DNA of 64,000 nucleotides from Heterodontus francisci. Lineage: Eukaryota. The stretch's first letter is position 1. Every line of letters starts with the position of its first letter. The stretch is taken from NCBI RefSeq assembly GCF_036365525.1, contig NC_090404.1, positions 7,254,001-7,318,000 of the forward strand, written 5' to 3'. The notes beneath the pieces were generated by a model, which saw only the letters and a program-made list of their open reading frames with translations, did no database searches and had not been told where the DNA came from. Positions 16,105 to 62,744 of this stretch are shown here, one piece after another. A program made the translations under genes and the position numbers.

Positions 16105-16152
16105 CTGCAGTCACAGTCACCATGGTCCCTTGTCCCCAGTAGTCCATTGCGT
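16105..16152 (-). CDS. IGHJ: JH segment, cluster A (AMDYWGQGTMVTVTA)
   Basis: WGxG motif, donor G|GTAAG, preceded by a 23-RSS. Confidence 0.97.
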
Positions 16153-16191
16153 CACAGTGTTACATTCCCTGGGCTGGGTCACACAATAACT
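16153..16191 (-). promoter_or_regulatory. JH 23-RSS
   Basis: AGTTATTGT - 23 nt - CACTGTG. Confidence 0.95.
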
Positions 16192-16504
16192 GGCTCTGCA
16201 CAGAATAGAGAGAAATCCATCATTATTTTAAATATCCACAGCCCAGAGGCAAAATAAAATCTTGATGGTTCTTTGTAAAATTATAACTGCGTTAATGATT
16301 CTTTTCACTCTTTATAATTTTCCCTGATGTTTTATATTTCACACAGTAACATATCAGCAATTATTGAAATCACCAACTGATGAATGTTTATCCATAATAA
16401 ACCATGCTAGGAGGACAGTGCTGCACACAAATAGAACTTCACTGTATATATCGTTGGATTGTTAAAGCGAGCACTGACCCAGACTCATCAATTAGTGCTG
16501 AGGG

Positions 16505-16573
16505 AGTTTTTGTATTGACAGTAACTGCTGTGCCACCCAGTATATCACAGTGAACCACATTGTGTAAAATACT
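16505..16573 (-). other. D2 segment (coding 16533-16545, ATATACTGGGTGG) with 12/12 RSS
   Basis: 5' AGTATTTTA-12-CACTGTG; 3' CACAGCA-12-ACAAAAACT. Confidence 0.93.
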
Positions 16574-16886
16574 GCGGTGGACTGTTAACTGCAAAATACA
16601 GAGATTAAATTCCACAGCGTCCTCAAAAACCTGATTCCGACTCCCCTCCGAGTATATCAGTAAGATAATTCAGTTTATACCCGTCATTATATTTATAAAG
16701 GGGATTTGAATACTTTTGAAGCTTCTGTACTGATTTAGCGTGACAGTCAGCACTAATTACGCAGGAGACTTTTATACATTTTTACAAATCTATATTATAT
16801 TTCCCCAGTATTTTTATTTAACCCTCATTCTTTACGGACCATCTACCGTGTTAAGTGATCACTGGTTTGTGCAAACTCCCTTATGG

Positions 16887-16967
16887 GGTTTTTGTATGAG
16901 GAATTCGCTCTGTACAGCACCGTGACCCAGTGCTGTACCCACAGTGACACGAACCTGCACAAATACT
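16887..16967 (-). other. D1 segment (coding 16925-16939, GGTACAGCACTGGGT) with 12/22 RSS
   Basis: 5' AGTATTTGT-12-CACTGTG; 3' CACGGTG-22-ACAAAAACC. Confidence 0.94.
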
Positions 16968-17351
16968 GCACTCACTCTCTGTTCAGTACTGCCTCTCACC
17001 ATTCACTTCATATAGAAATCCACTTCTGACCTAGTTCGGAATATATCCAAAAGTTTACACCACGCAGTAGGAAGTGACTCCAAGTAACTCGCTCCAGGTC
17101 TCAGTCACCTTAAAACTAGCATCTTATCCAGATCTGCAATTGCCGATACTGTTAACATTAAAAATCAGCACAGCCAAAATTACTCATCAGTACTTCGATC
17201 AGTGTCTTAGATTTGAACCATTGAATTTTCACTGTGCTAGTTGTGTAAGAGACGGTCTCTGGTCTGTTTCTGAACACTGCCGTTAATATTGTATTTCATA
17301 CAATTACTGACCGTTAGATTATGATGGAAGTGGTTGAATTCCCTCTCCATG

Positions 17352-17390
17352 TGTTATTGTACGGGTCCAGCCCTGGTTCTTCTCATTGTG
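17352..17390 (-). promoter_or_regulatory. VH 23-RSS
   Basis: CACAATG - 23 nt - ACAATAACA directly after YYCARD. Confidence 0.93.
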
Positions 17391-17695
17391 ATCTCTGGCA
17401 CAGTAATAAATGGCGGTGTCTTCGGTCTTCAGTTTCTTCATGTCCAAAGCGAAGATGTTTTTTGAAGTGTCTTTGGACGCAGTAAATCGATCTTTAATCT
17501 CTGGGGCGTAAGCATTGTTAGATGAACTATAGTAGCTAACCAGCAACTCCAGCCCCTGTCCGGGAACCTGTCGGATCCAGTACATCCTGTAGCTGCTAAG
17601 AGTGAACCCGCTGGTTTTACAGGTCAGTCTCAGGGAGCCTCCTGGTTTCCCGGTCTCTGCCTCTGACTGAGTCAACACGACATCCGAATGGACAC
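17391..17695 (-). CDS. IGHV: VH exon, cluster A (open frame)
   Basis: (R)[62 protein letters not shown]; both Cys and the core Trp present; acceptor tttacag. Confidence 0.97.
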
Positions 17696-17801
17696 CTGTA
17701 AAAAATATTTAAAAACCCGAGGATTAATCCTGGTGAAATTATTCCTGACTCTGTAACATTCCAGAGAGAGACTAACACTGAGACGGTAACAGTCTACTCA
17801 C

Positions 17802-17847
17802 GGGATAAGAAAACCAGCAACAGACTGAGAGAAATCGCCGACCTCAT
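17802..17847 (-). CDS. IGHV: VH leader exon, cluster A (MRSAISLSLLLVFLS)
   Basis: ATG at 17847, 46 nt, hydrophobic signal peptide, donor C|GTGAGT. Confidence 0.95.
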
Positions 17848-17937
17848 CCTTCTGGCAATTCAGGGAAAATGGTTCTGGTAAGAACTCACTGAACAAATCC
17901 ACTCCCGGACTGTTGTATTGTGGTCCCAGTGACCGGC

Positions 17938-18036
17938 ATTTAAATACCCGGCAGAAGGGGGCGAGGTTATAGGCGCCGCCTATTGATTCCCTGAGAGAGG
18001 CGGTTACTGGATCCACGTCCCACCTTCCACATCACT
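17938..18036 (-). promoter_or_regulatory. VH promoter A: TATA-like TATTTAAAT and decamer-like AGTGATGTGG; no octamer
   Basis: TATTTAAAT at 17938-17946, AGTGATGTGG at 18027-18036; both positionally conserved in cluster B. Confidence 0.65.
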
Positions 18037-19644
18037 AACAGAATGGACTCATATCATGACACTGGGATATTATTAAATGTGAACTTTTTATCTGCATCCA
18101 GGGATAGCGATTTGACTTTATGGTTTTAATGCTGTATTACGTGGTAGTAAATGGAGATATTGCAGTTGAGTATGTGTTCAGTAATAAATAATTGCATTGT
18201 GGACTGTAAATTAGATCTCTTTATTTCCTCAACTCTTCACAGGGGATGTGAATCTCTCAGGTTAAATTACATTACCAGGGTCTAAAGTGACTGTTAATGT
18301 GTGTCAATCCATCTCTCTATATCTATCCCTTCAGTCTATACCAATAATTTGTTAGCAATTTATGCAACTGAATGCGGGATATTAGTAAAGTGATTCTATT
18401 TGCAATGTGAATAACTGTAGTTACACGATTTAAGACCAGAGTGATTAGAAACGCCTAACATTATAAAAGTATCTCTCTCTCTCTGTATTTCTCGAATTGC
18501 TCCTGACTCTGTGACTCTCAGACAGCCCTTTGAAAATTGGCTGGAAAGGAAGTCCGCTTGCTTGATAATTAAGGAGTCAGAAGTAAAATTCAGATTATTT
18601 TTCGAAAAAGGGAATCCAGTGAATGAGAACCGAAACGGCGATCAACAAATCTACTCTCCGGCACCCAAATCATTGCAGCTAACTTTAATAGCAACAGTGC
18701 AATATACACTGGTTTCAGGAGCACAGTGAATCAGGACTTCACGCCATACTACAGAATATCACAAGAATAAATGTTTTATCAACTGTGGAAACGAATCGCA
18801 AACTGAGCATTTCTCTCCCCATTGTCTGTCTCATGTCTGGCTATGAGAGGGCTTGTTAAACAATCCAAATCATCATAAATTAAACTGTACATTACGCAAC
18901 TGTTATCAGTAATGGAGGAGTCTTTATTTGTTTGTGATTGACAGCTCTGTGAGAAAATTCAAGGAAATGCAGCGGACTCAAGGCAATTCCACCTATTTAT
19001 TTATTTACTTTGCGGTTCCCAATCTCTCAATACGGAATGTCGGGTGATTGAAATCTCTCTCTAGAACTTCATGCAATACGGAATAAATGGTCTTAATTAT
19101 CTAGAATTATATTTAATTGTCGCGTGGGTCAATTTATTATTTTGAACTCCCATTTTATCATGATCTGAGCACTAAATTTACAGAAAATCATTCTTTTGAT
19201 GTGATGCCACGTAAAATGCTTTCTTTTTTTGCAAGGGCCCCGCTGTATAAGTTAATGTTTAAATGGTTAAATCACATATTTTCCCATTCATATTCACGCT
19301 AATCTGCCCTCACAGTATTTGGCAGCAATCCAGTCAGGGAGGCTCGAACACCCAATGTTATTTACAGGAAGCATCTGTGGGTTCTGTGCAGTAAATCAAA
19401 GAACTGTTTCCTCATTACTAACGGCTTGGCTGCAAGCCAACTTCAAATCCTTAACATCGTCAATGAAGCCTATTCATAAACAAATCTACCCAGCAACAAC
19501 ACTGGAGTCAATTATATTTTTTCAGTTGTGGAACTATGTGAACTGTTCCCATCTCAGAAAAGGAAATGAATCCAGTGTCACAGCCACCCTGTTAGTAAAA
19601 ACAGTCCACTGGGGAACCTGTCCAGTACATCAACACATTGTAAT

Positions 19645-19651
19645 AGATAGA

Positions 19652-19695
<44 letters not shown>

Positions 19696-19700
19696 GATAG
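19645..19700 (+). repeat. (AGAT)n(AGAC)n microsatellite
   Basis: Directly visible. Confidence 0.95.
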
Positions 19701-21884
19701 TCTCAGAGAGAAAGAGAGGATGCATTCTGAAATAGATAAATATGCTTGTTTATGTGGATGGAGGGACAGCTGCAGTGATGTAGGAATGGATGGATAGTTG
19801 GATGTCTGATTGTTATGTTTAAAGGGCCGATGAACAGATTGGACATATGGATAGATGGGCAGGAAATATACTGTTCTACATTCACATCTTTGTGATCGAC
19901 TGCTCCTAACATGAAGCAGCCCGTTTCCTACATTTGCGTCAGTCTGAAGCCTCAGTCCTTCCCGATTTTCTGGTTTATTTCTACCTCGAGGGTACCCAGA
20001 ACTAATAAGATCAATTCACCAAGAGAATTCTAGAGATGTCACTGCGGGACTGATGATCCTTCTCTGCTGCTGGTAAATTTTCGTCTCAAACATATAAAGG
20101 GAGAATATGGCTGTGTTCAGAGGAGACGATTGTAATATTTCTGAACATGTGGTCCTTTCATGTACAACTAAGCTCTCAATATATCCTCACCCGAATTACT
20201 TCAGTCAAAGCAGAAATATAGCAAACCATTGGACACAATGTTTTCCACTTCCCAACGTAAACACTTATTTCTCTGAGACTGTTCCAGTCATACCATTCTA
20301 AACAGCACGGATCCAAAGGTATATGAATTGTAACGTTCTTTACCGCCATATATTCATTGTAAGTCATTGCCACAGTAAAATATATCCTGTGGGTATTACA
20401 CACTGTGGTCACAATTTCAAATGTCCTTAAATCCTTTAACAACACTCCCCAGAGCCTCTCTATTCAGTCTATGAATACACTAAATGAACTGTTCACGAGT
20501 TCAGTATTTCAGTGTGATTTACTCAGGTTGATGATAGAGGGTCACTGTGATAAGAAACTAAGAAATAGGAACAGGAGTCGGCCATTCAGCCCTTCGAGCC
20601 TGGTCCGCCATTCAACAAGATCATAAGATCATATGGTTGTGGCCTTAACTCCACTTTCCTGCCTGTCCCCCATAACTCTTGTCTCCCTCCAACACTATGA
20701 GAACAGAAGAATTAGGCGCAGGATGGAGACATGTGGTTGGAATGGACATGATATATCAACCAGACAGAGCTGAGTCGGTGATGTTGGTGATTTCAATCAC
20801 AGTTTTGAGGATGATTCTCAGGCCAGTGCTCGACAGCATGAGGTTAATGCAGAATCCTGCTTCTCAACCGGTTGCACATCTGTTTTAGGCTTGTTTAGTG
20901 TCAGGAGAACTGCAGTATGGATATAAAGCGTCCAATAAGATACCAGTGTGGAAATATTCAGTAATTAGCTTTCCCCACAAATTTCTGCTCCGAATTTATA
21001 CCTTGACACCCTTTCCGAATGCTCTAACTCCCTGCAAAATGTATTGTTCATGATGAGGTATAATTGGTGATATGTATTTAGGGGAATGGCGCCGACTTTA
21101 TCATTCTTGATTGACTCCTCCCCCTTGTGGAAGAGGCTGTCTCCCACAATATAAAATTATTAATCTGGTTTGAGAACAGTTCCCATTCCCGCTACCAGGA
21201 GTAACAAACTGTCTCTGCGCCAACTGACAGAAACAGATCGACGGAGAGACATTTCTAGATCAATCGATATTTCCCTCTTGTACAAGGAGGAGGGGTCAAT
21301 CGGGTTTAAGATTCAAAACAAATGATATTTCTCAATATTTCTGTTCTTCATCGAGTTTCCCAAACATGAGATGTTTCTCAATCCATTGATGGTTCCAATC
21401 TATTGATAGATCCACAACCATGAATTTTCTCAAACAATTGATAGTTTGCAACCAACTGATGTCTCTCCATCAATGAATCCCAATTCTTTCACCACTCTCA
21501 ATCGATTGATGTATCTCAATCTATTAATGATCACCAAATATTTAACGATTCTCAGTCCACTGAAGTTTCCTTTGTAGAAAATGGCCGACTTTGTCCACAT
21601 AGCCTTTGAATTATTGTGAAGTTCTGGATTACCTACTAAATGATTGATTGATACAGTACAATTCCAGAATGGCAGAGCTTTTCTGGTGTTGGATTCAAGG
21701 TCACACCCACAGTCAGTGTCTGTACTACCGGTCATACAGTACATAACGGGGGGATACCTGAGAGGTCTGGACTCAGTCTGATTTAACACTGTATCGAGAT
21801 CAAAAGTTCAACTGTTGAATGCCTGGAGTTCTATTTCCCTATTCCACCCTGATCTATATTTTAATTAGCATTGACACTTGATCA

Positions 21885-22362
21885 TCAGCCACAGATCAGT
21901 TGGTAGCACCTTGCCCTCTCAGGTTTCAGTTTCAAGCCCTACTCCAGGACGTGAACACAAAAATGACACTGACTCTCCAGTCGAGTGCTGCACTGTCAGA
22001 GATACCATTTTAAGGATGGGACATGAAACCGAGGCGCTGTCTGCCCTCTCAGGTGTAAAAGATCCCATGGCACTATTTCGAACTAGTGCAATGGAGTTAT
22101 CCCCGGTGTCCTGATCAATATTTATCCCACAACCAACATCACAAAAACAGATTATCTGGTCATTATCGCATTGCTATTTGTGGAGGGGCCGAATGGCCTA
22201 CTCCTGCTCCTAATTCGTGTGCTCGTATGTTTGTTGTGTGAAATTGGCCACTGTACTTCCTACATTACAGAAGTGACGACACTTCACAAGTAGTTCATTG
22301 ACTGTAAAGCTTTTGAGACGTCCTGTGGTCGTGAAAGGCGCTATATAAATGCAACGTCTTTC
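21885..22362 (+). mobile_element. DeuSINE (SacSINE1-like)
   Basis: gtaaaagatcccatggcactatttcg..tccccggtgtcctg..aatatttatccc core; tail gtgaaaggcgctatataaatgcaa. Confidence 0.75.
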
Positions 22363-22689
22363 TTTTGTTCTTTTTATTAACAATAGATGTTAAAAAAGGA
22401 GTGTTGGAATGAGCCAGGAACTCATACACTCCTAGAATGATAAAGCTAAGAAGGAGGCCATTCAGCCTTTTAGGCCTGTGCCAACTCTTTGATAAATCGA
22501 TCCAATTATTCCAATACCCACTGCTACTTCCACAGAGTGGTGCAACTCTTTTTCAATTTGAAATATTTATTAAATTTCCTTTTAAAAGTTATTATTCAAT
22601 CTGCTTCCACCATGCTTTCAGGCAGTGCATTCCAAATCATAACAATTCCCTCTTTCATTTATATTCCCCCTCATATCGCCTACAGTCAG

Positions 22690-23880
22690 AGAGTTACTTA
22701 CGGCACAGAACGAGGCCATCGGCCCATTGAGTCCACAGAGCTATTCAATTAGCCCCATTCCCCCACGCACCCTCATAGCCCTGCAAGTCTATTTACTTCA
22801 AGTGGTCATCCAATTCCATTTTGAAGTCATTTCTAGTCTTCGCTTCCACTCCCCATGTGGGCAGCGAGATCCAGATCATTCCCACCCACCGCACAAAAAG
22901 TGCTTCCTCATATTCCCCCTGCATCACTTACCCAAACCTTCAATCTGTGTCCCCTAGTCCTTGTACCATTAGTTAATGTGAACGGTTTTTCCTTCTCTAA
23001 TTTACCTAAGTCTTTCATAATCTAGTACATTTCTGTCAAATTTCCCCCCAATCTCCTTTCTTCTAAGGAGAATAACCCCAGTTTCTCCAACCGAACGTTG
23101 TAACTAAAATCCTCCATCCCTGGAACCATTCTGATAAATTTCTCTCAAGGACCTTCACATCCTTCCAAAGGTGTGGTGATCAGAACTGGATGCAATACCC
23201 CAGTTGTGGCCTAACCAGAGCTTTATGGAAGTTTAGCATAACTTCCCTGCTTATGTTCTCAATGCCTCTGCTTATGAAGCCCAAGATCAAATATGCTTTA
23301 CTAAGAACACACTCAATATGTCCTGCCACCTTCAAAGATCGATGCACATGCACTCCAAAGTCCCTCTGTTCCTGCACAATCTTTAGAATTGTGCCATTAA
23401 GTACATATTGCCTCTCCCTATTCCTTCTGCCAAAATACATCACCACGCGCTTGTATTAAATTCCATCTGCCACTTATCTGCTCTCTCTGCTCGCCTATCT
23501 AAGTCCTGTTTATATCATCCTCACTGTTTTCCAGGCCTTAAGATTTGGTGTCATCAGCAAGTTTTGAGATTCTACTCCATTTCCACTTGAATCTGTGTCC
23601 TCTGGTTATCAACCCTTCTACCACTGGATATATTTTCAGTTTATTTATTCTATCCAGCCTCTTCATGATTTTGAATGTCTCTATGACATCCCCTTTTAAC
23701 ATTCTCTGCTTTCAGCAGAACAATCTCAGCTTCTCCAGCCTCTTCATGTAACTGAAATCTTTCACCCAAAGTATCATTTTCGAAAATCTTTCTGGACCCT
23801 CTTCAATGCCTCGATGTCCTTCTGAAAATTTGACGCCCCGAAATGGGCACAATACTCCAGCTGGGGCCGACTGGTGTTTT
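22690..23880 (-). mobile_element. CR1 LINE fragments, shared with 55420-56700
   Basis: ORF 23180-23446 QRDFGVHVHRSLK..ALVRPQLGYCIQF. Confidence 0.85.
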
Positions 23881-24759
23881 GTAAAAGTTTATCCTAATCC
23901 TTATTTTTCTATTGGAGTAGTCTATGGTCTAGTGCAATGAGAACTGAGACAAAAGCTAAGTTAATATCAACAGATACATGGCACGGTGTACTAATAGCTG
24001 AGACAGGATCTAGTGTAATATAAATTGACACAATGAAATACTAAAAGATACATTATCTAGGGTAATGTAGACGGAGATGTGACGTCGTATCCTATAAACA
24101 GCGAAATCATCTTGTGCAATAAATTTAGAGCCTTGGTCAAATTTATTAAATGATCTGAAATTACGTTTTGAATAGAAGGAAATAAAATGCTAAAACATAA
24201 TTTGTGAAGATAATCATCTATCTTTGTCGAATCCACACACACGCACATACACGCATGTGCAGTTATATGTGTGTTTGTGTGTGCTCGATTCGGTTTAGGT
24301 TATTCCGATGTCGCGGCTGAGAGCTATAGAATTCAGTGGATTTTAGGACCCTGCGGCAGTCCAAACGGCTGTGCGGTGTCACAGTTCCAGACTCTGTCTG
24401 ATGCAGTCAGTTAGTTCGAGGAAGGCTAAATAGAAAAGCCTACAGGAAAAACATCCTTGAACAAGAAAAAGAAACCATGAGCAATTATCACAGTACAACA
24501 CGAATACGAATTAGTAAAATTTATCACAACAGTTTGTCACTGCGTAGTAAAAAAAAAGACATGCTCTGTTGCTCACTGTTAGTTCTGTCCTTCAATTCCA
24601 GTTTATCTCTGAAAGATTGTTACATTACTCCAGCTGAGGCTTACCAGTGTTTTGCAAAAGGTTAGCATAATGATTATTTTTCTACTGGAATGGACTATGG
24701 CCGAGTGCAATGAGAACTGAGGCGCAGATTACTGCAATATAGACAGATACATGGTCCTG

Positions 24760-25505
24760 TCGAGCACATTACATTGCACTAAACCCTGTTTACATTACAT
24801 CACACTCGGCCCTATTTCTTGTCTCCGTTTTCAATGCAGAAAAGTGTGCCTCATAGTATAATATACAAGATTCTGCCTCAGTTATTACTGTACTAGACCA
24901 TCTCTCTCTCTTATATTTCCCTACCTCCTCCCTCAGTTATTAACCATGTTTCTATTTCCATTGCACTGGACCCTAACTCAGTTATCATTTGACTAAATAA
25001 ATTCTCTGCTGGTATTTCACTAGACCCTTCCTCTGTTTGTGTTGCACTAGACCCTGTGTCATTTATTACTCCATTGGACCATGTCCCTGTTTACATTACA
25101 CTAGAAATTATCTCAGTTGGCACTGCTTTAGAAATCTCTTTGTTTATATTGCACATGACTCATTCTAGATTATTACGACACGAGACCATGCATCTGCTCA
25201 GATTACGCTAAACTGTGTCTCAGTTATTTCTGCTCTGGACCATATCTCTGTTTAGATTATACTAGGCCTGCTCCATCTTACTACATTAGACCATGTGCAA
25301 TTATTAGTGCAGGAGACTATTTATCTGTTTATAATACATTATGCTATTCTCAGTTATTATAGCACTAACTCATGTCCCACCTATATTGCACTAGATCATG
25401 TTGTATTTTTATATTATGCTAGGCCATGCGTTAGTTACTACTGCACGATTATACCACACTAAACCATGTCACTTCGTCTCGTAGGTTAGCTTGCGTCTCA
25501 GTTAT
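24760..25505 (+). repeat. 27-bp satellite array (degenerate)
   Basis: Consensus CTGTCTCTGTTTATATTACACTAGACC. Confidence 0.8.
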
Positions 25506-27509
25506 TAATGAATTGAACCGTAAATATATTGGAGGACGGCGAGGAGTAGATAGTGAAGGTAACAGGCTAAAAGGGAAGTTTGTGGAAACAGAAATGGTGT
25601 TGAATTCACTGAAAAGCAGCAACCGTTTTATTCCTTTGCAAAAGAGGGAAATAATAAATCAGTCATTTACAGATTTTCACATCAGGTACAGGCAGTTTCA
25701 TTTTTACCATCACTTGCATAAATCATCACACACTCGAGGTATATACCAGCAGCTACTGTGTGATGGTGAGGTGATCACTTAACAGAGACAGGTGGGTCGC
25801 TGCTTATTTCCCTCGATCTGCAATTACATTTTGAATTTAATAAATGCAAAAAGAAAGATCAGTGAAGCTAATTATTTCTATTTGTGGAATTGAAAGCAAT
25901 ATGATGTGTTTTGTTCACATACACAAACACATAAATAAGTAAACACTTGCAGGTTATTTTGCTGGAAGTGTGAAGCCAGGGGCTCAATGGGCACTGTGCT
26001 AATGAAACACCCTGTTTGAATGTCTGCATTTAGCACACAATTTTGATCCTAATTGATAATTACCACAATTGTATTTGCCTGAAGGTGCTAAACCAGAGAC
26101 CTGCAGATTTAGCTCTCAAGTGCTGATTAACCACAATTTTCTTGAAACAGTCTATGTGGGTTCCATGAACCCACTTCTCGTACAAGTGTTGGGTGGCCTG
26201 GCTGACACACAGTGACATGTTTACGGATGGCTCAGGAGCCAACTGAGAGTGTGCACAGATTCTCAGATACAGCATTGTAGGTCCTGGTGAAGGAGATCCT
26301 GGGGAGGCAGGATATCCTGTACCGCAATGGGGCAGGACACCACCTCATTCAACTGTCTCACTATCCTGCAGCAACTGGGGCTGCTCTGCCTGGCCTCATG
26401 TCCTCCCCTCCATTCAGCCAACCAGCAAGGTGCCAATGATCAAGTACTTCTTTTCTCCCGTTGACTTCGATAAGGTTAAGTCGCACAGCTCTTACACTTC
26501 TTGAGTGAGGCCTTCAGAGAATTTCCAAGAATAAATTTTGATAGGGTGTTGGAAAAGTCGGAAAAGTGTCCCAGAATTTCTCCGGATGGGTTTCAAAAGT
26601 CCGCTTCAAACTTCCAGCAACCAATGGACAATAAAAGGTGATGTACCTTTAAGTAGCACAGAATACCTCTGCAGCAACGTTTTACTCCCAATCAGCTGGT
26701 TGTTGTTTAGAGAGAGGGTTGGCCAAGTGCTAGTTACCAAAATGGTGTGCAGCCGATTTAATAAGCGTTAACAGAAGATTTTCAGTAACAATCAGCTGCA
26801 GACTGATCCTCCGTATCCTAGTCCAAGTGTCAACTCTTTTACCAAGACATTATCTTCCATTAAACTCAGGCTAAATCAATGTTTCAGCTAGAGATCCCAC
26901 CTTGGCTCCATTGGAGCCTACATCGCACTTAAAGTATCAGGGACGTCCCCCCTCTACCATCCTCCCCCGACAATGTCTTTCAGGTGACATCATGAAACAA
27001 TAGTCTCGCCTCTCCCTCTTCTCTGTTGATGTGGCTATTAAAGTTCCCATAGTTCCCACACTGTGTCCTGATCAACATTCCTCCCTTCAACCATGGTTTG
27101 ACATCCTTCCATCTACATGCAGCAAACCATTTATTAAGGTGGTGTGTCTTCTCTTGGTGTGCCTTTGCTGAGGGCTGTGAAGGCCAATCATTGAGGGGCA
27201 GCTGCTGCCACAAGTGCCACAACTTAATCAACCAAAATCAATGAAAATACATTGACAGATGTTCAGTCACTTTGCTCTATTATTGATGTTTCTGGGCACA
27301 AATCGGCCACGTTCATCTGGAAATAGTTGCACCACACATTTTGGGACCTCTGAGAGAAGGTGATGATCTTGTACATCAATGCTAGTTGTTTCTTGGTGTA
27401 TTACGACCAGAAACAGTAACTGACATCGACATTTTCACAATAGGAGTAATGGCCAAATACAACCACCAGGTGTCAGTGAAAGCCCGATTGTTGACATTAC
27501 ATGAAACAG

Positions 27510-38625: not shown

Positions 38626-38694
38626 CCGTCAGTCTGTCTGTCTATCTATCTAGCTGGCTGTCTATCTATCTAAGAGATGTTTTACAGTGCAGCC

Positions 38695-50199: not shown

Positions 50200-50445
50200 C
50201 TTGAACTTCTTTCAATTCAGTATAGTGTATTCACTGCTCACACTGTGGTCTTCTCTACATTGGAGAGACCAAGCCCTGACTGGCTGATTGCTTTGTGGAA
50301 AACTTCCGTTCAGTCTGCAGGTATAACTCTGAGCTTCCAGCCTCTTCCTCTGTTTCACTGGCTCAAACTGGTTCTGATAAAAGGACACAGACCTGAAATG
50401 TTAACTGTTCCTCTCTACATTGTTGCTGCCAGACCTGCTGAGTAT
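50200..50445 (+). mobile_element. Degenerate Penelope-like fragment (GIY-YIG remnant plus pLTR)
   Basis: gtattcactgctcac..tctctacattggagagaccaag and gacctgaaatgttaact..gccagacctgctgagtatt. Confidence 0.65.
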
Positions 50446-50544
50446 TGCACCCCACAGAGACATCACACATTGCTTCCTCCCTGGGACAGCTCAGGGTCAG
50501 ACACTGAACATACTGCACCCCGTAAAATAGCCCGCCCATTCCAG

Positions 50545-51930: not shown

Positions 51931-51944
51931 CAAAGTCGCAAGCT

Positions 51945-53670
51945 GTGAGTGGAGCCGGAAGACATAGTTGAGGTTTTAAATGATGACTTTTCATCTGTGT
52001 TCACCATGGAGAAGGACGATTAGGTGTAGAGATCAGGGTGGGGGATTGCGATATACTTGAACATATTAGCATTGAAAGGGAGGAAGTATTAGCTGCTTAG
52101 CGAGCTTCAAAATGGATAAATCCCCAGGCCCAGATGAGATGTATCCCAGGCTCTTATGTGAGGCAAGGGAGGAGATAGCAGGGGCTCTGACACAAATTTT
52201 CAAATTCTCTCTCGCCACAGAAGAGGTACCTGAGGACTGGAGGACAGCGAATATGGGACCATTATTCAAGAAGGGTAGCAGGGATAAACTAGGTAATTAC
52301 AGGCTCGGGAGTCTAACATCAGTGGCAGGGAAACTATTGGAAAAAATTCTGAACGACAGGATTAATCTCCACTTGGAGAGGCAGGAATAAATCAGGGATA
52401 GTAAGCAAGGCTTTGTCAAGGGGAGATCGTGTCTAACAAACTTAATTGAATTTTTCGAGGAGGTGACGAGATGTGCAGATGAGGGGAAAGCAGTTTATGT
52501 AGTCTACATGGACTTCAGTAAGGCTTTTGCTAAGGTCCCGCATGAGAGATTAGTTAAAAAGGTAAGAGCCCATTGAATCCGGGGCAATTTGAAAAATTGG
52601 ATCCAAGATTGGCTTCCTGGCAACAGGCAGAGGGTGATGGTCGAGGGTTGCTTTTACGATTGGAAGCCTGTGACCAGTGCTGTACCGCAGGCATCGGTGA
52701 TGAGACCCTTGCTGTTTGTAGTGTACGTTAATGATTTAGATGTGAATGCAGGAGGTATGATCAGTAACTTCGCAGATGACACAAAAATTGGTGGTGTCAG
52801 AAATAGTGAGAAAAGGCTTAGATTGCAGGACGATATAGATGGGCAGAGCAGTAGCAAATGGAATTTAATCCTGAGAAGTGTGAGATGATGCATTTTGGGA
52901 GGGCTGATAAGGCAAGGGAATATACAATGGATGGTAGGACCCTAGGAAATACAGGGAGTCAGAGGGATCTTGGTGTATTGTCCATAAATCACTGAAGGCA
53001 GCACCACAAGTAGATAAGATGGTTAGGAAGGCATATGTGATATTTGCCTTTATCAGCCGAGACATATAATATAAGAGCAGGGAAGTTATGATGGACCTGT
53101 ATAAAACGCTAGTTGGGCCACAGCTGGAGTACTGTGCACAGTTCTGGGCACCACACTACAGGAAGGATGTGATTGCACTGGAGAGGGTGCAGAGGAGATT
53201 CACCAGAATGTTGCCTGGGCTGGAGCACTTCAGCTATGAAGAGATACTGGATCGGATAAGTTAGTTTCCTTAGAGCAGATAAGGTTGAGGGGGGACCTGA
53301 TTGAGGCATATAAAATTATGAGGGGCATTGATAGGATAGATGGGAAGAAACTTTTTTCCCTTAGCGGAGGGGTCAATAACCAGGGGGCACAGATTAAAGG
53401 TATGAGTCATGAGGATTTGAGGGGATTTGAGGAAATAGTTTTTCACCCAGAGAATGGTTGGAATCTGGAGCACACTGCCTGAAGGGGTGGTAGAGGCAGG
53501 AACCCTCACAACTTTTACGAAGTATTTCGACGAACACTGGAAGTGCCATAGCATACAAGGCTACGGGCCAAGTGCTACAAAAAAGGATTAGAATAGATAG
53601 GTGCTTGATGGCCGGCACAGACACGATGGGCTGAAGGGCCTGCTTCTGTGCTGTATTATTCTATGACTCT
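51945..53670 (+). mobile_element. CR1 LINE ORF2 remnant
   Basis: DKSPGPDEMYPRLL, NYRLGSLTSVAGKLLE, FADDTKIGG; attctatgactcta tail. Confidence 0.92.
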
Positions 53671-54239
53671 ACATCAACAACTGGCACCTGTACTCGATCA
53701 CTGGTCTAAAGCCTAGCTACCCGACCAAACCAGAATACGTGTGTCAGGTTCGGGTCGAGTCGGGCATTTAAAAATAAATGCACTGGCCGAAGAGGTGGAA
53801 CAGTTTCGAGGTTAATCCTGTCAACATTCAGAATAACAGACTATAAAGGAACAGTGATCTCAAAGACAATCTCGTGCAGCATGTCTGCAGGGGATGTGTT
53901 GAATCAGGTTCAAAGGGATTTAATTATATATGTTTTCTATATTAGACAATCAAATTAAAATCTGGAACTGAGATGGGGATATGGATTGGTGTTAGATGGG
54001 AGGATTTGGATCAGTGTATTACTCCAGGAAGTCTTGCAATCAGAGTGAAATTATTTCCAAAATGATTCCTGTAATAACAGTAATCCCATTGCTATCTGTT
54101 GGTGTAAGACTAATTTAAGTATTTAAAGTGGAGACCACAGGCATGTTAGAGAATGATATCCAAAAGGAATTTGTGACCTGTCCAAGGAGATTAGTGAAGG
54201 GAAAGGAAGGGATGTGGAAGGCACCAGACACTGGAAGAT

Positions 54240-54466
54240 TTCATTGTTTCTATTACGGTATGTCACATCTCTGTCTATATTACACACGACATCGTCTCAG
54301 TTATTACTGCACTCGACGACGACTTTGTTTCTATTACACCAGATACTGTCTCATTTATTACTGCATTGCACAATGTGTCAATTTATACTGCACTAGATTC
54401 TGACTCAGTAATGACTAAACCGCGCCATGTATCTGTATATATTACATTAACCCTTGTCTCAGTTCT
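54240..54466 (+). repeat. 27-bp satellite array at the edge of arm B
   Basis: Same consensus; partly homologous (inverted) to 23920-24030. Confidence 0.75.
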
Positions 54467-55366
54467 GGTGGAGTAGCAGATAGTGAAGGGGACTGTCAGA
54501 GAATACAGCAGAATATCGATAGACTGGAGAGTTGGGCAGAGAAATGGCAGATGGAGTTCAATCAGGGCAAATGCGAGGTGATGCATTTTGGAAGATCCAA
54601 TTCAGGAATGAACTATGCAGTAAATGGAAAAGTCCTGGGGAAAATTGATGTACAGAGAAATTTGTGTGTTCAGGTCCATTGTTCCCTGAAGGTGGCAACG
54701 CAGGTCAATAGAGTGGTCAAGAAGGCATATGGCATGCTTTCCTTCATCGGACGGGGTATTGAGTACAAGAGTTGGCAGGTCATGTTACAGTTGTATAAGA
54801 CTTTGGTTCGGTCACATTTGGAATACTGCGTGCAGTTCTGGTCGCCACATTACCAAAAGGATGTGGATGCTTTGGAGAGGGTGCAGAGGAGGCTCACCAG
54901 GATGTTGCCTGGTATGGAGGGCGCTAGCTATGAAGAGAGGTTGAGTAGATTAGGATTATTTTCATTAGAAAGACGGAGGTTGAGGGGGGACCTGATTGAG
55001 GTGTACAAAACCATGAGAGGTATAGACAGGGTGGATAGCAAGAAGCTTTTTCCCAGAGTGGGGGATTCAATTACAAGGGAACACGAGTTCAAAGTGAAAG
55101 GGGAAAAGTTTAGGGGGGATATGCGTGGAAAGTTCTTTATGCAGAGGGTGGTGGGTGCATGGAACGCATTGCCAGTGGAGGTGGCAGACGCGGGCACGAT
55201 AGCGTCTTTTAAGATGTATCTAGACAGATACATGAATGGGCAGGAAGTAAAGAGATACAGAACCTTAGATAATAGGCGACAGGTTTAGATAGAGGATTTG
55301 GATCGGCGTAGGCTTGGAGGGCCGAAGGGCCTGTTCCTGTGCTGTAATTTTCTTTGTTCTTTGTTC
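54467..55366 (+). mobile_element. Young 5'-truncated CR1 LINE specific to arm B
   Basis: 245-aa open ORF 54551-55288; (ttctttg)n tail; empty site near 23940. Confidence 0.92.
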
Positions 55367-55419
55367 TCATTGCATTAGGCCATAGATTACTCGAGTTGAA
55401 AAATAATGCTTATGATAAA

Positions 55420-56700
55420 CTTTTACTAAACTCCAGTAGGCCTCAGCGGGAGTATTGTGTCAAGTTCTGGCTACCACATTTTCAGAAAGACATCGAGAAG
55501 TTGGAGAGGGTCTGGAAAAGATTTTCTAAAATGGTACCAGGGATGAAAGATTTCAATTACGTGGCGAGAGTGAACGAACCGAGATTGTTCCACGGAGAGC
55601 AGCGAAGATTAAAAGGAGATTTCATAGAGGCGTTCAAAATCATGAAGCATTTTGATAAAATGAATAAACTGAAAGCATTTCCAGTGACAGAAGGGTCAGT
55701 AACCGGAGGAAACAGATTCAAGGTGAACTGCAATTTAACCAAAGGCGACATATAAATGACTTGGAACTTGGAATACAGAGCAGAATCTCAAAATTTGTGG
55801 ATGACACTAAATTTGGAAGTGTGGCAAACAGAGAAGATAATGTGAACCGCCTGCAACAGGACATAGATAGACTAGCAGAGTGGGCAGACAAGTGGCAGAT
55901 GGAATTTAATACTGACAAGGGTGAGGTGATGCATTTTGGCAGAAAGAATAGGGAGAGGCAATATATACTTAATGGCGCAGTTCTAAATTGTGTGCAGGAA
56001 CAGAGTGATCTGGGGGTGCATGTGCATCGATCTTTGAAGGTGGCAGGACATATTGAGTAGTTTAGTAAAGTATATGAGATCTTGGGCTTCCTAAACAGAG
56101 ACACTGAGAAGAAAAGCAGGGAGGTTATGCTAAAAATTTATGAAGCTCTGGTTAGGCCCCAACAATAGTATTGTGTCCAGTTCTGGTCACCACACTTCAG
56201 GACGATGTGAGGTTCTTTGAGAGGGTGCAGATATATATCAGGATGGTTCCAGGAATTACGTATTTTAGTTACAAGATTAGATGGGGAAAACAGGAATTAT
56301 TCTCCTGATAACAAAGGAGATTGAGGGGAGATTTGAGAGAAATATGAAAGCTTATGACAGGCTTAGGACAGTTAGGCAAGGAAAACCTGTTCACATTAAC
56401 TGATGGCAGAAGAACTAGGGGATACAGATTGAAGGTTGTGGGCAAGAGATGCAGGGGACTATGAGAAAGAACTTTATAATGTAGCGGGTGATAATGATCT
56501 GGGACTCGCTGCCCACCAGGGTGGTAGAAGTGGAGACAGTAAATGACTTCAAAATGAAATTGGATAGCCACTTGAAGGAAATAGACTTTCAGGCCTGCGA
56601 GGGTCGAAAGTGGGAGTGGGACCGACTGAATAGCTCTGTGGAGAGGTGGTATGGACTCAATGGGCCGAATGGCCTCCTTTTGTGCTGTAAATGACTGTGT
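55420..56700 (+). mobile_element. CR1 LINE fragments, counterpart of 22690-23880
   Basis: ORFs 55354 and 55761 (KFVDDTKFGS, QMEFNTDK). Confidence 0.87.
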
Positions 56701-57034
56701 AGCTCAATGACTCCAGACAATATGACGGAGAAGATAAATGACAGACCAAATTGCTATGATCCGGAATGCACTGCCTGAAAGTGTGGTGGAAGCTGTTTGG
56801 TTAATAACTTTTTAAAGGGGAATTTAATAAATATTTCATATGAAAACAATAAGTAAATATCTGTTCTGGCGTAATAGCAGGGGGCAGTAGAATAATTGGA
56901 TATGTCTTTCGGAAAGCTGGTACAGTCCTGAGAGGCTGAATGACCTCCGTCTCAGCTTTATCATGCTCGGAGCGTATGATTTACTGGCTGAATCCAACAC
57001 TCTTTTTTTTTACACCTGTTGTGAATAAAAAGAC

Positions 57035-57525
57035 TAAAAGAAAACAAGTTGCATATCTATAGCGCATTTCACGACCACAGGACGTCTCAAAGGCTTTTCA
57101 GCCAATGAGCTACTTGTGAAGTCCCCTCACTGCAGTAATGTAGGAGACGCAACAGCCAATTTCCACACAAGAAAGCAGACAAATATATGAATTTGGAGCA
57201 GGAGTAGGCCACTCGGCCCCTCCACAGACACAAATGCGACAATGATAAGATAATCTCTTTTTGTGATGTGTATTGAGGGATAATATTAATCAGGGCACCG
57301 GGGATAATTTCCCAGCACTGGTTTGAAATGGTACCATGGGATATTTTCCACCTGAGAGGGCAGACAGCGCCTCGGTTTCATGTCTCATCTGAAAGTCGAT
57401 ATCTCCGACAGTGGAGCACTCCACTGGAGTGCCAGTGCAATTTTTGTGCTCGTGCCCTGGTTGAGGAGTTGAAAATAGAACCTGCTAACTCAGGGGGGAG
57501 AGTGCGAGCAACCGAACCACGGTTA
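57035..57525 (-). mobile_element. DeuSINE, duplicated counterpart of 21885-22362
   Basis: Reverse-complement homology, including the same internal CR1-tail piece. Confidence 0.75.
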
Positions 57526-59127
57526 TTGCTAATTAAAATACAGAGCAGGGAGGAATAGGTAAATGGAACTCCAGGAATTCAACAGTTCAACTTCCAATGT
57601 AGATACAGTGTTCAATCAGACAGAGTCCGGGCCTTTCAGGCATTCCCCCAGAATGTACAGTACGGACAGCAGTGCAGGAACTGACTGTGGGCACGACCTT
57701 AAATCAAGCACCAGAATATCTCTGCCATTCGGGGAATTGTACTGTATCTTTCAACCATTTAGTAGGTAACCCAGAACTTCACAATAATCCAAAGGCTATG
57801 TGGACAAAGTGGGTCATTTTCTGCATAAGAAACTTCCGTGGAATGTGAATTGTTAAACAATTGATAGATTGAGAAACATCAATCGATTGAGAGTCGTGAA
57901 AGGCTTTGGAATCATTGATACATCGAGAGTCATCAATCGGTTGCAAGTTATCGATTGTTTCAGAAAGTTGGTTGTTGTGGATCGATCAATAGATTGGAAA
58001 AAATCAATGAATTTAGGTACATCTAATGTTTGGGAAACACGATGAAGGACACAAATATTGAGAAATATCATTTGTTTTGAATATGCAACTCGGTTGACAG
58101 CACCCCCTCCCCCCAACCCCACCATAAAATAGGGAAATACCTATTAATTCAGAAATGTCTCTCTGTCTATCTGTTTCTGTTAGTTAGCGCAGAGACAGTT
58201 TGTTACTCCTGATAATGGGGAATTGAGGGGGTATGGGAATTGTGCACAAACCTGATTAATAATGCTCGATTCTGGGACACAAACTCTTATACTAGGGGGA
58301 GGGGTCAATCGGGAATCGATCAACTCAGTGCCATTCCCCTAAAAAACGTCACAAATTGCACCTCGATATTAATAATTCATTTTGCACGGCCTTGGAACAT
58401 TCGAAAAGAGTGTCAAAGTATAAAATCAGAGCACAAATGCGTGTGGAGAAATGATTACAGAATATTGACATACTGGCATGTTATTGGAGGCTTTATCTCC
58501 GGCAGCAGTTTCCTCCAACACCAAAGAAGTCTAAGACAGAAGTGCAACCAGTTGTGAAGCAGGATTCTGCATTAACCTCATGCTATAGAGCACTGGCCTT
58601 ATAATCATGGTCAATATTGTGATTGGAATCACCATATTCAGCAACGTCGCAGACGCAGCTCTGTCCAGCTGATGCACCATGTCCACTCTAACCATATGTA
58701 TCCATCTGCTCATGTTTCTTATGGTCTTTGTGATTGACAAGGGAGTCAAGTGTTAACGGAGGCAAACAGGAAAGTGGAGTTGAGGTCACAATCAGATCAG
58801 CCATGAACTTATTGAATGGAAGAGCAGGCTGGAGGCGCCGAATGGCCTAAGCCTGCCCCTATTCCTTATGCTGTTATCACATCAAACTGAGCACATCTCA
58901 CTGAAGTACTGAATTCACACGTGCAATTCGTGAAGAATTCATTCAGTACATGAATGGACTGAATGGAGAGCCTCTGGGGAGTGTGTTTAAAGGAGTTGGG
59001 GACGTTTGAATTTGTGACCACGATGTGTAATACCCACAGGATATATTTCACTGTAGCAATGATGTACAATGAATATAAGGCGGTAAATAAAGTTACAATT
59101 TATGCTCCTTCTATGTGGGACTGTGCT

Positions 59128-59392
59128 AGTCTCCTGTGTGGCGTTTGGAAAGTCTCCCTGTGATTGCGTGTGTTTTCGCCGGGTGCTCTGGTTTCCTCCC
59201 ACAGCCAAAGACTTGCAGGTTGATAGGTAAATTGGCCATTATAACTTGCCCCTAGTATACTACCTCGTGCAGGTGCTAGGGAAGGTGGGGATGTGGGAGG
59301 GTAATGGGATTAAAGGATTAGTATAAATGGGTGGTTGATGGTCGGCGTGGACTCGGTGGGCCGAAGGGCCTGTTTCAGTGCTATATCTCGAA
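59128..59392 (+). mobile_element. V-SINE (HE1-like), 5' truncated
   Basis: V-domain and 3' end as in the 3352-3692 copy; absent from the homologous site in arm A. Confidence 0.82.
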
Positions 59393-61631
59393 ATACATTT
59401 TTCAAAAATTCATGTAGGGCAGTGGAAAAATGTATCTACTCGTTTGCTACATGTCTGCTGTGGTTGAAGTAATTCGGGTGAGTGCTTTGTTGTTCGTGAA
59501 AGGACCACATGTTCAGAAATATTGCAATAGTCCTTTCTCAACCCAGTCATAGTATCCCTCTGAGACGAAAATTCGCCATCAGCAGAGAAGGAACATCTGC
59601 ACCACAGGGATACCTAAGGTTTCTCTTTGCGAATTCAGCTCGTTAATTCCGGATAACCTAGGAATTCAAAATGATCTAGAAAATCAGGAAGGACTGAAGG
59701 CGTCAGACTGATACAAATGACATAAAGGGGCCGGTTCAGGTTAGGAATAATAGATCAGAAAGATGAGACAGCATCTTCCAGGCCCATCTCTCCATCTATC
59801 CATTCATTCTCCCATCTATGAATCCATCCATCAATCAATCTGTTCATCGGTCCTTTAAACAAAACGTTCAGACCTCCAACTATCCATGCATTCCAGCATC
59901 GCTGCATCTGTCCCTCTATCCGTGCAAGTCAGTGTATTTATCTATTTCAGAAGGCATCCTCTCTCTGATGCCCTCTCTGTCTGTATACGTGTTTGTCTGT
60001 CTATCTATCTATCTGCATATCTGTTGCAATGTTATGATGTGCTGACAGATCCTCCAGTGCACTGTTGCAACTAACAGGGTGTCTAGAGTTTGGATGTATT
60101 TCATTTCCTGAGAGATGGCAACAGTTCACAGAGTTTAACAACTGATAAAAAAAATTGACTGCAGTATTGTTGCTGGGTAGATTTGTTTATGAATTGGCCT
60201 CATTCACAATGTTAACAGTTTGAAGTTGGCTTGCAGCCAAGCGGTCAGTAAAGAGGAAACAGATCTTTGATTTAATGCACAGAATATCCAGATGCTTCCT
60301 GTAAATAATATTGGGTATTCGAGGCTCCCTGACAGTAGTTAGCTGGGTTGCTGCCAAATACTGTGTGGGGCAGATTAGCGTGAATAGAATGGACAAAAAT
60401 GGAATTTAAACATTTAAACATTAACTTAATCAGCAGCGCTCTTTAAAAAAATGCATTTTACATGATATCACATCTAAAGAATGATCTTAGGTAAATGCAG
60501 TGCTCACATCACGATATAATGGGAGCTCAACATAATAAATTGACCCAAATGTCAATTAAATATGATTCTAGATAATTAAGAACATTTATTTCGTACTGCA
60601 TGAAGTCCTAGAGAGAGATTTTAATAACCCCACATTGATATAAGTGGGACTAGCATAATAAATAAATAGATAGAATTGCCTTGAATCCGCTGCATTTCCT
60701 TGACTTTTCTCACAGAGGTGCGAATACATTCAAACTAAAGACTCCTTTATTACTGATAACAGCTGCATAACGTACAGTTTACTTTCTGATGATTTCGATT
60801 GTCAAACTAGCCTTCTCGTAGCCAGGCTACTATTGGATAGAGAAATGCCCTGTTTGTGATCCGTTTCCACAGTAAATATTCTTGTGATATTCTGTAGCAT
60901 AGCGTTGAGTCTTGATAACTGCGTTTCTGATACAAAAGTATGTTGCACAGTCTGTCGCTCTTACAGTTATCTGCAATGATTTGGGTGCAGGGGGATAGAT
61001 TTGCTGATCGACCTATCGGTTCTGATTCACTAGTTCCTGTTTTTCAAAAGCTGATCTGAATTTTACATGTCACTCCTTCATTATCAGGCAAGTCAACTTA
61101 TTTTACAGGTAATTTTCAAATGGCTGGCTTAGGGTCATAGAATCAAGAGCAATTCGAGAAATACACACAGAGAGAGAAAGACTTGTGTAATGTGAAGTGT
61201 TTCTATTCACTCTGGTCTTTTGTAGTGTAACTGCAGTCATTCACGCTGCAAATCGAATCACTTCTCTAATATCCCGCATTTTCTGCATAAAATTATTTAA
61301 AAAGAAAACATTATCGGGGATACTTTATTGCTATAGATCGAAGGGTTGGATAGCAAGAGACAGAGCAACGAGCAGTCACTTTTGACGCCATTAATATAAT
61401 TCAATCTGAAGCTTTGACATCCTTAGTGTAGTCTTGACGAAATAAAAGGGTTTAATTCACAGGCCACAATGCAATTATTTATTACTGAACGCATTCTCAA
61501 CTGCAATATTTCCATTTAGTAACAAGTAACAGTTTGCATTCAAACCATACAGTCAAATACCTATCCCGAGAAAGAGATAAAACGTTCACATTTAATAATA
61601 ACCCAGTCTAATGATATGAATCCATTCTTTT

Positions 61632-61730
61632 GGTGATGTGAAAAGTGGGACGTGGATGCAGTCAAGGCCTCGGTCAGGGAATCGATAGGCGGCGCCTGGA
61701 ACCTCGCCCCCTTCTGCCGGGTATTTAAAT
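61632..61730 (+). promoter_or_regulatory. VH promoter B
   Basis: GGTGATGTGA at 61632-61641 and TATTTAAAT at 61722-61730, homologous to promoter A. Confidence 0.65.
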
Positions 61731-61820
61731 GCCATTCACTATCACTGCAATACAACAGTCCTGGAGCCAGTTTGCTCAGTGAGTTCTTGGCAGAACCATT
61801 TTCACCGAATTGCCAGAAGG

Positions 61821-61866
61821 ATGAGCTCGGCGATTTCTCTCAGTCTGTTACTGGTTTTCTTATCCC
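61821..61866 (+). pseudogene. IGHV: VH leader exon, cluster B (MSSAISLSLLLVFLS)
   Basis: ATG at 61821, 46 nt, donor GTGAGT; intact, but splices to a V exon with a stop. Confidence 0.93.
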
Positions 61867-61993
61867 GTGAGTAAGTTTTATTGTCCGTTTCTCTCACTGT
61901 TACTGTCTCAGTGTTAGTCTCTCTCTGGAATGTTACAGTGTCAGGAATTCTTTCACCAGGATTAATCCTCAGGGTTTTTGATATTATTTACAG

Positions 61994-62324
61994 GTGTCCA
62001 TTCGGATGTCGTGTTGACTCAGCCAGAGGCAGAGACCGGGAAACCTGGAGGCTCCCTGAGACTGACCTGTAAAACCAGTGGATTCAATCTTGGCAACACC
62101 CGGATGTACTGGATATGACAGGTTCCCGGGCAGGGGCTGGAGTGGTTGGTTCACTACGATGCTTCATCCAGCAATAGTTACGCCCCAGAGATTAAGGATC
62201 GATTTACTGCGTCCAAAGACACTTCAAATAATATCTTCGCTTTGGCCATGAAGAACCTGAAGACCGAAGGCACCGCCATCTATTACTGTGCAAGAAACAT
62301 TACTACATTGGGTACACTGAGTGG
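61994..62324 (+). pseudogene. IGHV: Pre-joined V-D1-D2 segment of cluster B with in-frame stop
   Basis: [47 protein letters not shown]; TGA at 62116-62118; no V RSS; D1-like TACTACATTGGGT and D2-like ACTGAGTGG fused to V. Confidence 0.94.
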
Positions 62325-62352
62325 CACAGCAGTTACTGTCAATACAAAAACT
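62325..62352 (+). promoter_or_regulatory. D2 3' 12-RSS of cluster B
   Basis: CACAGCA-GTTACTGTCAAT-ACAAAAACT, identical to the cluster A D2 3' RSS. Confidence 0.95.
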
Positions 62353-62657
62353 CCCTCAGCGCTAATTGAAGAGTCTGGGTCAGTGCTTGCTTTTACAATC
62401 CAACTATATATACAGTGAATTTCTATTTGTGTCCAGCACTGTCCTACTAGACGGTTTATTATGGATAAACTGATGAATTATTCATTCATCAGTTGGTGAT
62501 TTCAATAATTGCTGATATGTTGCTGAGTGAAATATAAAACATCAGGATAATGTACCAACAGTGAAAAGAATCATTAGCGCAGTTAGAATTTACAATTTTA
62601 ATCTGGGATGTGGATGTTTAAAATAATGAGGGCTTTATCTCCATTCTGTGCAGAGCC

Positions 62658-62696
62658 AGTTATTGTGTGACCCTGCCCAGGGAATGTAACACTGTG
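62658..62696 (+). promoter_or_regulatory. JH 23-RSS of cluster B
   Basis: AGTTATTGT - 23 nt - CACTGTG. Confidence 0.95.
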
Positions 62697-62744
62697 ACAC
62701 CATGGACTACTGGGGACAAGGGACCATGGTGACGGTGACTGCAG
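62697..62744 (+). CDS. IGHJ: JH segment, cluster B (TMDYWGQGTMVTVTA)
   Basis: WGxG motif, donor G|GTAAG. Confidence 0.96.

Follow-up and report, generated by a model that had tools for sequence, protein, structure and literature searches.

A head-to-head pair of immunoglobulin M clusters in the horned shark: an inverted duplication with matched recombination signals

Shark heavy-chain genes are the standard example of a locus built of clusters: each variable (V) segment joins only its own two diversity (D) segments and its own joining (J) segment, and diversity comes from the junctions and from mutation. Here we analyze a stretch of 64,000 nucleotides of the horned shark Heterodontus francisci (contig NC_090404.1, positions 7,254,001 to 7,318,000; "the window") in which two immunoglobulin (Ig) M clusters, A on the minus strand and B on the plus strand, face away from each other. 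The closest described systems, for which papers are cited by PMC number and for the passages concerned, bear on joining both within and between clusters. For Heterodontus, gene-specific oligonucleotides placed rearrangement within rather than between clusters in 1993, the individual clusters being 18-20 kb in size (PMC2191167). For the nurse shark, 78 rearrangements all lay inside their own miniloci, recombination between heavy-chain (IgH) loci in B cells was called 'rare, if it exists', and B cells were described as having few, fully completed rearrangements with the remaining loci in germline state; in the thymus, nurse shark IgH genes show widespread, partial rearrangement (PMC2435157). In print, the lack of cross-joining in sharks has been put down to distance and to shared polarity (PMC3014032, PMC5192425), and inversional joining across shark clusters has been discussed and thought unlikely in a paper that reports zebrafish light-chain clusters joining by inversion over as much as 81 kb (PMC3014032).

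Three further sets of reports are relevant. At mouse Igh, the RAG recombinase robustly uses only recombination signal sequences (RSSs) convergent with the J RSS, in deletional joining, and inversional joining at mouse Igk proceeds via unusually strong RSSs and short-range diffusion near Cer (PMC11153149). In sharks, trans-rearrangements of IgM or IgW V segments to T-cell receptor (TCR) delta-chain D segments are reported as common and ascribed to close linkage in a 2025 paper that also assigned shark IgH clusters to chromosomes (PMC12227049). Finally, horned shark and little skate are listed as bearing clusters of the type VDD-J//C, in which V and both D segments are joined in the germ line ahead of J and the constant (C) exons (PMC2193153); joined shark genes have been argued to arise from RAG-like activity in germ cells, and germline-joined shark genes are expressed, mainly early in life (PMC2193156). 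We found no open-access text on head-to-head shark IgM clusters or on inversional IgH joining between shark clusters, the search having been of running text, with figures, supplements and the locus maps of PMC12227049 lying outside it.

We consider it highly probable that the pair is an inverted segmental duplication that holds a working cluster A and a dead, germline-joined cluster B, that rearrangement proceeds in cis, and that the arrangement is no cross-joining device. Cluster A is a complete IgM minilocus on the minus strand, with V, D1, D2, J, and four C-mu exons (CH1 to CH4):

17802..17847, minus strand: leader exon of cluster A, 46 nt, with the ATG at 17847 and a GT donor at 17801
17391..17695, minus strand: V exon of cluster A, an open frame with two cysteines and a YYCAR motif, Pfam V-set expect value (E) 3.1e-17
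17352..17390, minus strand: 23-RSS of V of cluster A, made of CACAATG, a 23-base spacer, and ACAATAACA
16887..16967, minus strand: D1 unit of cluster A, with D1 at 16925-16939, a 5' 12-RSS at 16940-16967, and a 3' RSS with a 22-base spacer at 16887-16924
16505..16572, minus strand: D2 unit of cluster A, with D2 at 16533-16545, a 5' 12-RSS at 16546-16572, and a 3' 12-RSS at 16505-16532
16105..16191, minus strand: J unit of cluster A, with a 23-RSS at 16153-16191 and J at 16105-16152, followed by a GTAAG donor
1586..7552, minus strand: constant exons of cluster A, with CH1 at 7552-7256, CH2 at 7043-6735, CH3 at 2787-2479, and CH4 plus the secretory tail at 1977-1586

The V, D1, D2, and J segments of cluster A share one orientation and occupy 1.74 kb from the ATG at 17847 to the end of J at 16105. 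All four constant exons are open, with AG/GT borders and consistent phase, and there are four Pfam C1-set matches downstream of J (E from 2e-12 to 2e-21). Among named sequences, H. francisci HV01 stands nearest to the V exon, with 82% identity, and a Scyliorhinus torazame sequence comes next at 78%; the leader, compared by eye, is identical to that of HV01 at 18 of 19 positions. The RSS on the 3' side of D2 (16505-16532) reads CACAGCA, a 12-base spacer, and ACAAAAACT, its heptamer agreeing at 5 of 7 positions with the consensus CACAGTG as quoted in a passage of PMC2193153. The spacer of the RSS 3' of D1 is 22 bases long, not 23, a detail absent from the preliminary description of this stretch. 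Cluster A is apparently a functional cluster of the canonical form V-D1-D2-J-Cmu1-4.

Cluster B, on the plus strand, is of the germline-joined VDD-J type and retains the 12-RSS 3' of D2 together with an unjoined J:

61821..61866, plus strand: leader exon of cluster B, with the ATG at 61821
61994..62324, plus strand: V-D-D exon of cluster B, with V to about 62295 and then a 29-nt junction at 62296-62324; no RSS between the V and D bases
62116-62118, plus strand: stop codon of cluster B, TGA in framework region (FR) 2 where cluster A has CGA, a CpG transition
62325..62352, plus strand: 12-RSS 3' of the fused D2 of cluster B, identical at 28 of 28 bases to 16532-16505 of cluster A
62658..62744, plus strand: J unit of cluster B, with a 23-RSS at 62658-62696 and J at 62697-62744, followed by a GTAAGG donor

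Cluster B lacks the 845 bp that in A begin at the V RSS and end at the 5' RSS of D2; the 29-nt junction takes their place. This junction contains GGTACA, which matches the first D1 bases of A at 6 of 6 positions, and its 3' end shares 10 of 13 bases with D2 of A. Loss of a block of 845 bp, with D1-like and D2-like remnants left behind, is what RAG joining in the germ line characteristically produces. Divergence of 11% from A, together with a mutated junction, suggests that the joined state is an old germline event. A second lesion accompanies the stop codon: the conserved Asp of FR3 is replaced by Gly at codon 92 of the exon. The portion of the exon 3' of the stop still has a Pfam V-set match (E 6e-07). 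Between the 12-RSS and the 23-RSS of J lie 305 bp of intersegment. The window ends at 64000 inside the J-C intron of B, whose constant exons lie beyond it; by symmetry with A, CH1 of B may be expected about 7 kb past that point.

That these are two arms of one duplication is indicated by a minus-strand blastn comparison of the window with itself, which delineates the following parts:

14870..24066: arm 1, which holds part of the J-C intron of A, the J, D2, D1, and V segments, and 5' flank of about 6 kb
54333..64000: arm 2, with the 5' flank, VDD, and J of B and the beginning of its J-C intron; runs past the end of the window
24067..54332: spacer of about 30 kb outside the duplication, with reverse-transcriptase fragments, a C2H2 zinc-finger open reading frame (ORF), and satellite-like repeats

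The arms align in four collinear blocks (14870-16544 with 64000-62313, 17394-20256 with 62295-59414, 20323-23955 with 59103-55352, and 23940-24066 with 54466-54333), each of 76-78% gapped identity. The arms are at least 9.2 kb long, and their homology is still unfinished where the window ends (14870 against 64000). The sole break in their collinearity is the V-D-D intersegments lost from B. By this alignment, the cluster pair is a diverged, old inverted duplication. In the whole window, tblastn with the exons of A finds two V exons and only one set of C exons; in 24067-54332 it finds no V, J or C exon.

The segments described in the two clusters are real gene segments and not chance motifs: the V exons of A and B match Pfam V-set, the exons downstream of J in A match C1-set, and in RNA-like contigs a leader splice, V-to-J joints, and a splice from J to CH1 fall at precisely the borders given. 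The latter evidence comes from three runs of one sample that were kept as contigs (unitigs of about 60 nt), each run at most 0.09 of the sampled words, with 8036, 8310, and 84 contigs placed over 61600-64000; the contig pieces listed are 49-104 nt long, mostly with 2-4 differences from the window. These contigs behave like lymphoid RNA, in that their depth, when summed, is very high over leader, V, and J and close to zero in intersegment and intron. A leader splice from 61866 to 61994, with GT..AG borders, is carried by 14 X1 contigs and 9 X2 contigs, possibly of paralogous origin. Past J the contigs have a loose end of 19-23 letters, the same letters with which CH1 of cluster A begins. Since the contigs are short and derive from the whole cluster family, including paralogues, a V cannot be linked to a J through them, nor a contig assigned to one cluster. 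They show neither transcripts of B nor A-B chimeras, the latter lying beyond their reach.

Among the joints listed (84 of all kinds, 69 of them outside the listing), all 14 V-to-J joints leave V at 62291-62299, the ordinary end of an unjoined V, and none leaves from the fused end of B at 62320-62324. The letters between V and J in expressed joints (62291-62711) contain a D1-like core of the GGTACAGCAGTGG type and a D2-like core of the ATATACTGG type; the cluster family therefore uses both D segments per join, as expected for shark IgM. At position 61804 the letter of B itself is almost absent, another letter accounting for 353,859 of 354,779 depth units in X1.

One candidate marker was rejected on the same data. 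The preliminary description had offered the bases of J as a means of recognizing cluster B in transcripts. Position 62734 is covered by the contigs, and no alternative letter reaches 10% there, the threshold for listing; this marks the G of J(B) as the usual letter in expressed J segments, with the T of A (16115 region) a minority one, so that the G is not specific to B. The remaining two differences between the J segments lie within the first five J bases, which joining usually trims.

The extent of divergence between A and B differs from one part of the clusters to another. The J 23-RSS of B is identical to that of A at 38 of 39 positions, and J itself at 45 of 48. Taken together, the RSSs of B match those of A at 66 of 67 bases, against 89% in the adjoining intersegment (binomial P about 0.004). 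The two V segments differ by 13 synonymous and 20 nonsynonymous changes, a ratio of nonsynonymous to synonymous substitution rates (dN/dS) of 0.41 with the stop codon skipped. From these comparisons B was probably a working VDD-J gene during much of the period after the duplication and lost its V recently, through a CpG transition. Two candidate causes of the conservation of the RSSs of B are such past use as a working VDD-J gene, which is likely, and gene conversion. Past use is a plainer account than joining to A; B, while it was a working VDD-J gene, would have needed its own RSSs.

We therefore picture the region as follows. It is an old inverted segmental duplication within a large, multi-cluster IgH locus of the Heterodontus type, and carries two divergently transcribed IgM miniloci. 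Cluster A would assemble its V exon by three short deletional joins of its own segments. Cluster B would descend from a cluster of the same kind in which RAG joined V, D1, and D2 in the germ line, giving rise to a VDD-J gene whose V was later killed by a CpG-to-TpG stop in FR2. Each cluster would use, or would formerly have used, its own J at a distance of 372-380 bp, and the head-to-head layout and the matching RSSs would be by-products of the duplication. Rearrangement would then be cis-only in practice, with no role for B as a donor or a decoy. Of this picture, the sequence establishes the anatomy, the duplication, the germline join, the stop codon, and the RSS geometry, whereas the restriction to cis and the lack of a role for B are inferred.

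The preliminary description had proposed a different role for the pair, namely that the two clusters, head to head with ATGs 43,974 bp apart, could recombine with each other by inversion. Its account of the layout holds throughout. The distance is recovered exactly (61821 - 17847 = 43,974 bp); B does keep an intact J, 23-RSS, and splice donor and a D2 12-RSS that is the same as that of A, and its own V does contain a stop codon. The geometry proposed is also topologically right. In plus-strand order, the D2(A) 12-RSS and the J(B) 23-RSS both read nonamer, heptamer, coding end; they are not convergent, and joining between them would therefore proceed by inversion. With cuts at 16532|16533 and 62696|62697, the interval inverted would be 46,164 bp, in agreement with the figure of about 46 kb that had been put forward. 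The predicted products are V-D1-D2 of A placed before J(B) in reading orientation and a heptamer-to-heptamer signal joint beside J(A). The converse event, VDD(B) to J(A), which had likewise been suggested, is possible on the same grounds, with cuts at 62324|62325 and 16152|16153 and an inversion of 46,172 bp.

Not every compatible pair would give a useful product. Judged from the coordinates, joining of the V(A) 23-RSS to the VDD(B) 12-RSS would put both V genes on an excised circle; other 12/23-compatible pairs between A and B would likewise be destructive, so that frequent cross-talk would be costly. A search of the window for a heptamer-to-heptamer signal joint in germline form returned a single match with two mismatches, at 53130, and at least one such match occurs in 27 of 100 shuffles, so this match is attributable to chance. 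No CTCF-type motif was found between the clusters (0 matches against 0.03 expected), a result that is uninformative.

Could cluster B be alive? The TGA might be a sequencing or assembly error, or an allele, in which case B would function as a VDD-J gene with a single rearrangement to make, in cis. The lesion is a single CpG transition in an otherwise open V exon, the leader, splice sites, RSSs, and J are intact, and both the dN/dS of 0.41 and the reported expression of germline-joined shark genes, mainly early in life (PMC2193156), would suit a living gene. However, the conserved FR3 Asp has also been replaced by Gly, the listed V-to-J joints avoid the fused end of B, and the letter of B at 61804 is almost absent from the RNA-like contigs. 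We regard a living B as unlikely.

The inversion itself could be in use: a 46 kb RAG inversion might occur in developing B cells often enough to matter, with B acting as a second J-C donor for V(A) or, as a decoy, inactivating it. The points that favor this proposal also weigh against our cis-only account. The geometry and the 12/23 compatibility of D2(A) and J(B) are confirmed, and the 12-RSS, 23-RSS, J, and donor of B are intact; its RSSs, better kept than their surroundings, could mean continued use. Neither of the two printed obstacles, distance and same polarity, applies to a pair spaced by 44 kb in opposite polarity. There are precedents as well, in passages that concern other loci: inversion between zebrafish light-chain clusters reaches 81 kb (PMC3014032), and shark RAG is able to join across loci, from Ig V to TCR-delta D (PMC12227049). 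Moreover, the evidence for cis-only joining is old and of low depth, consisting of the oligonucleotide screening of 1993 and, in the nurse shark, of the 78 rearrangements plus single-cell polymerase chain reaction (PCR), and the distance between nurse shark clusters was taken in that work to be 120 kb or more (PMC2435157).

Against the inversion stand the distances, for the cis partner lies 380 bp away in A and 372 bp away in B and the trans partner 46 kb away, which makes the former about 120 times closer. The reports cited above point the same way: joining in Heterodontus is within clusters (PMC2191167), joining between nurse shark IgH loci is 'rare, if it exists', nurse shark B cells switch on few clusters and finish them quickly (PMC2435157), and scanning at mouse Igh takes only convergent RSSs (PMC11153149). 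By the coordinates, the other compatible pairs would delete both V genes, and the conservation of the RSSs is explained equally well by the past of B as a working VDD-J gene, with its dN/dS of 0.41. On these grounds we hold it to be quite improbable that the inversion is frequent enough to matter. To a broader version of the idea we likewise give little credence; in it, head-to-head pairs about 44 kb apart would recur in the locus, an occasional RAG inversion across such a pair would move V-D-D or VDD onto the J of the neighbor, and the RSSs of a dead B would be kept by that use. Joining of A to B by inversion is physically allowed and is expected to be, at most, a rare by-product.

An assembly artefact, whether a contig joined wrongly or a false palindrome, is hardly credible: multi-copy Ig loci are indeed hard to assemble, but the window contains zero N, and arms that differ by 7-25% and by many insertions and deletions, including the 845 bp VDD deletion, must be different loci and not one locus assembled twice.

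A chimeric transcript would need to be read with caution. Switch-type recombination or joining of Ig V to TCR-delta could mimic a V(A)-C(B) transcript, and transcripts alone would thus be no proof of an inversion mediated by RSSs. Switching between shark clusters reportedly (Zhu et al. 2012) occurs in the J-C intron and not at RSSs. Switch-type recombination between shark IgH clusters is also mentioned in passing in a review (PMC5192425).

Retroelement debris makes up the spacer. LINE-type (long interspersed nuclear element) reverse-transcriptase-like ORFs occupy 4753-5996 on the plus strand, antisense inside the 3.9 kb C-mu2/C-mu3 intron of cluster A, and similar fragments lie elsewhere, at 36052-36663, 41236-43082, 47653-48501, and 54551-55755, with Pfam RVT_1 matches in the spacer. 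Within the spacer, 46913-47563 on the minus strand is an open 216-residue ORF with tandem C2H2 fingers (Pfam zf-C2H2, E 1e-33), either a live ZNF exon or a relic. Short tandem or satellite-like repeats form inverted blocks in the spacer (28450-29750 with 39100-39960, and 39520-39950 with 44950-45070), seen as staggered blastn matches of 64-83% identity. At 34542-34952 on the plus strand, an ORF of low complexity with much His, Thr, and Pro looks like a translated simple repeat, not a gene. A repeat of about 265 bp, probably a SINE-like (short interspersed nuclear element) element, has two copies in introns of cluster A (3364-3633 and 9460-9690) and one inverted copy in the 5' flank of B (59133-59394), at 75-83% identity. 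An Rfam scan of the whole window returned no family at gathering score.

The interest of the pair is that, with its 44 kb spacing, divergent orientation, and matched RSSs, it turns an old question into one with known breakpoints. Cross-joining, were it found, would be an intermediate between the cluster and translocon types of organization, and would bring a first, low-level kind of combinatorial or secondary joining of heavy-chain segments to a cluster-type locus. Were deep data to exclude it, the autonomy of clusters would have to be enforced by something other than distance or orientation, for which the activation of one cluster at a time in the nurse shark is a candidate.

Set beside the known systems, both units are of known kinds, an elasmobranch IgM minilocus and its germline-joined VDD-J variant. 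Cluster A is like other horned shark IgM clusters in its split leader, V 23-RSS, D1 with 12- and 22-base spacers, D2 with two 12-base spacers, J 23-RSS, and four C-mu exons. Cluster B is like the VDD-J//C clusters listed for the horned shark (PMC2193153), from which it differs by the stop in V that makes it a pseudogene copy. The 1993 report on Heterodontus, as represented by its abstract (PMC2191167), concerns individual clusters only, whereas here two of them are paired divergently at 44 kb. The mechanism proposed for A and B is likewise of a known kind, that of inversion between zebrafish light-chain clusters, and is in the present case a valid but unsupported idea. The zebrafish clusters, in the relevant passages of Zimmerman et al. 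2008 (PMC3014032), resemble the A-B pair in opposite polarity and 12/23-compatible RSSs, and their inversions retain the intervening DNA and allow 'leapfrog' joining; the distances are 81 kb there and 46 kb here. The zebrafish joins were shown by complementary DNA clones fitted to sequenced bacterial artificial chromosomes, whereas A-B joining is a prediction from the germline layout. Unlike the zebrafish light-chain clusters, the A-B pair belongs to a heavy chain, has two D segments, and includes a partner cluster with a dead, pre-joined V. With mouse Igk and Igh, as treated in the passages cited from Zhang et al. 2024 (PMC11153149), it shares the question of whether J-bound RAG can use a non-convergent RSS. 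Trans-rearrangement of shark Ig V to TCR-delta differs in that it takes place in T cells and yields TCR chains. What is possibly new here is only the documented layout, a divergent pair of heavy-chain clusters 44 kb apart with matched RSSs.

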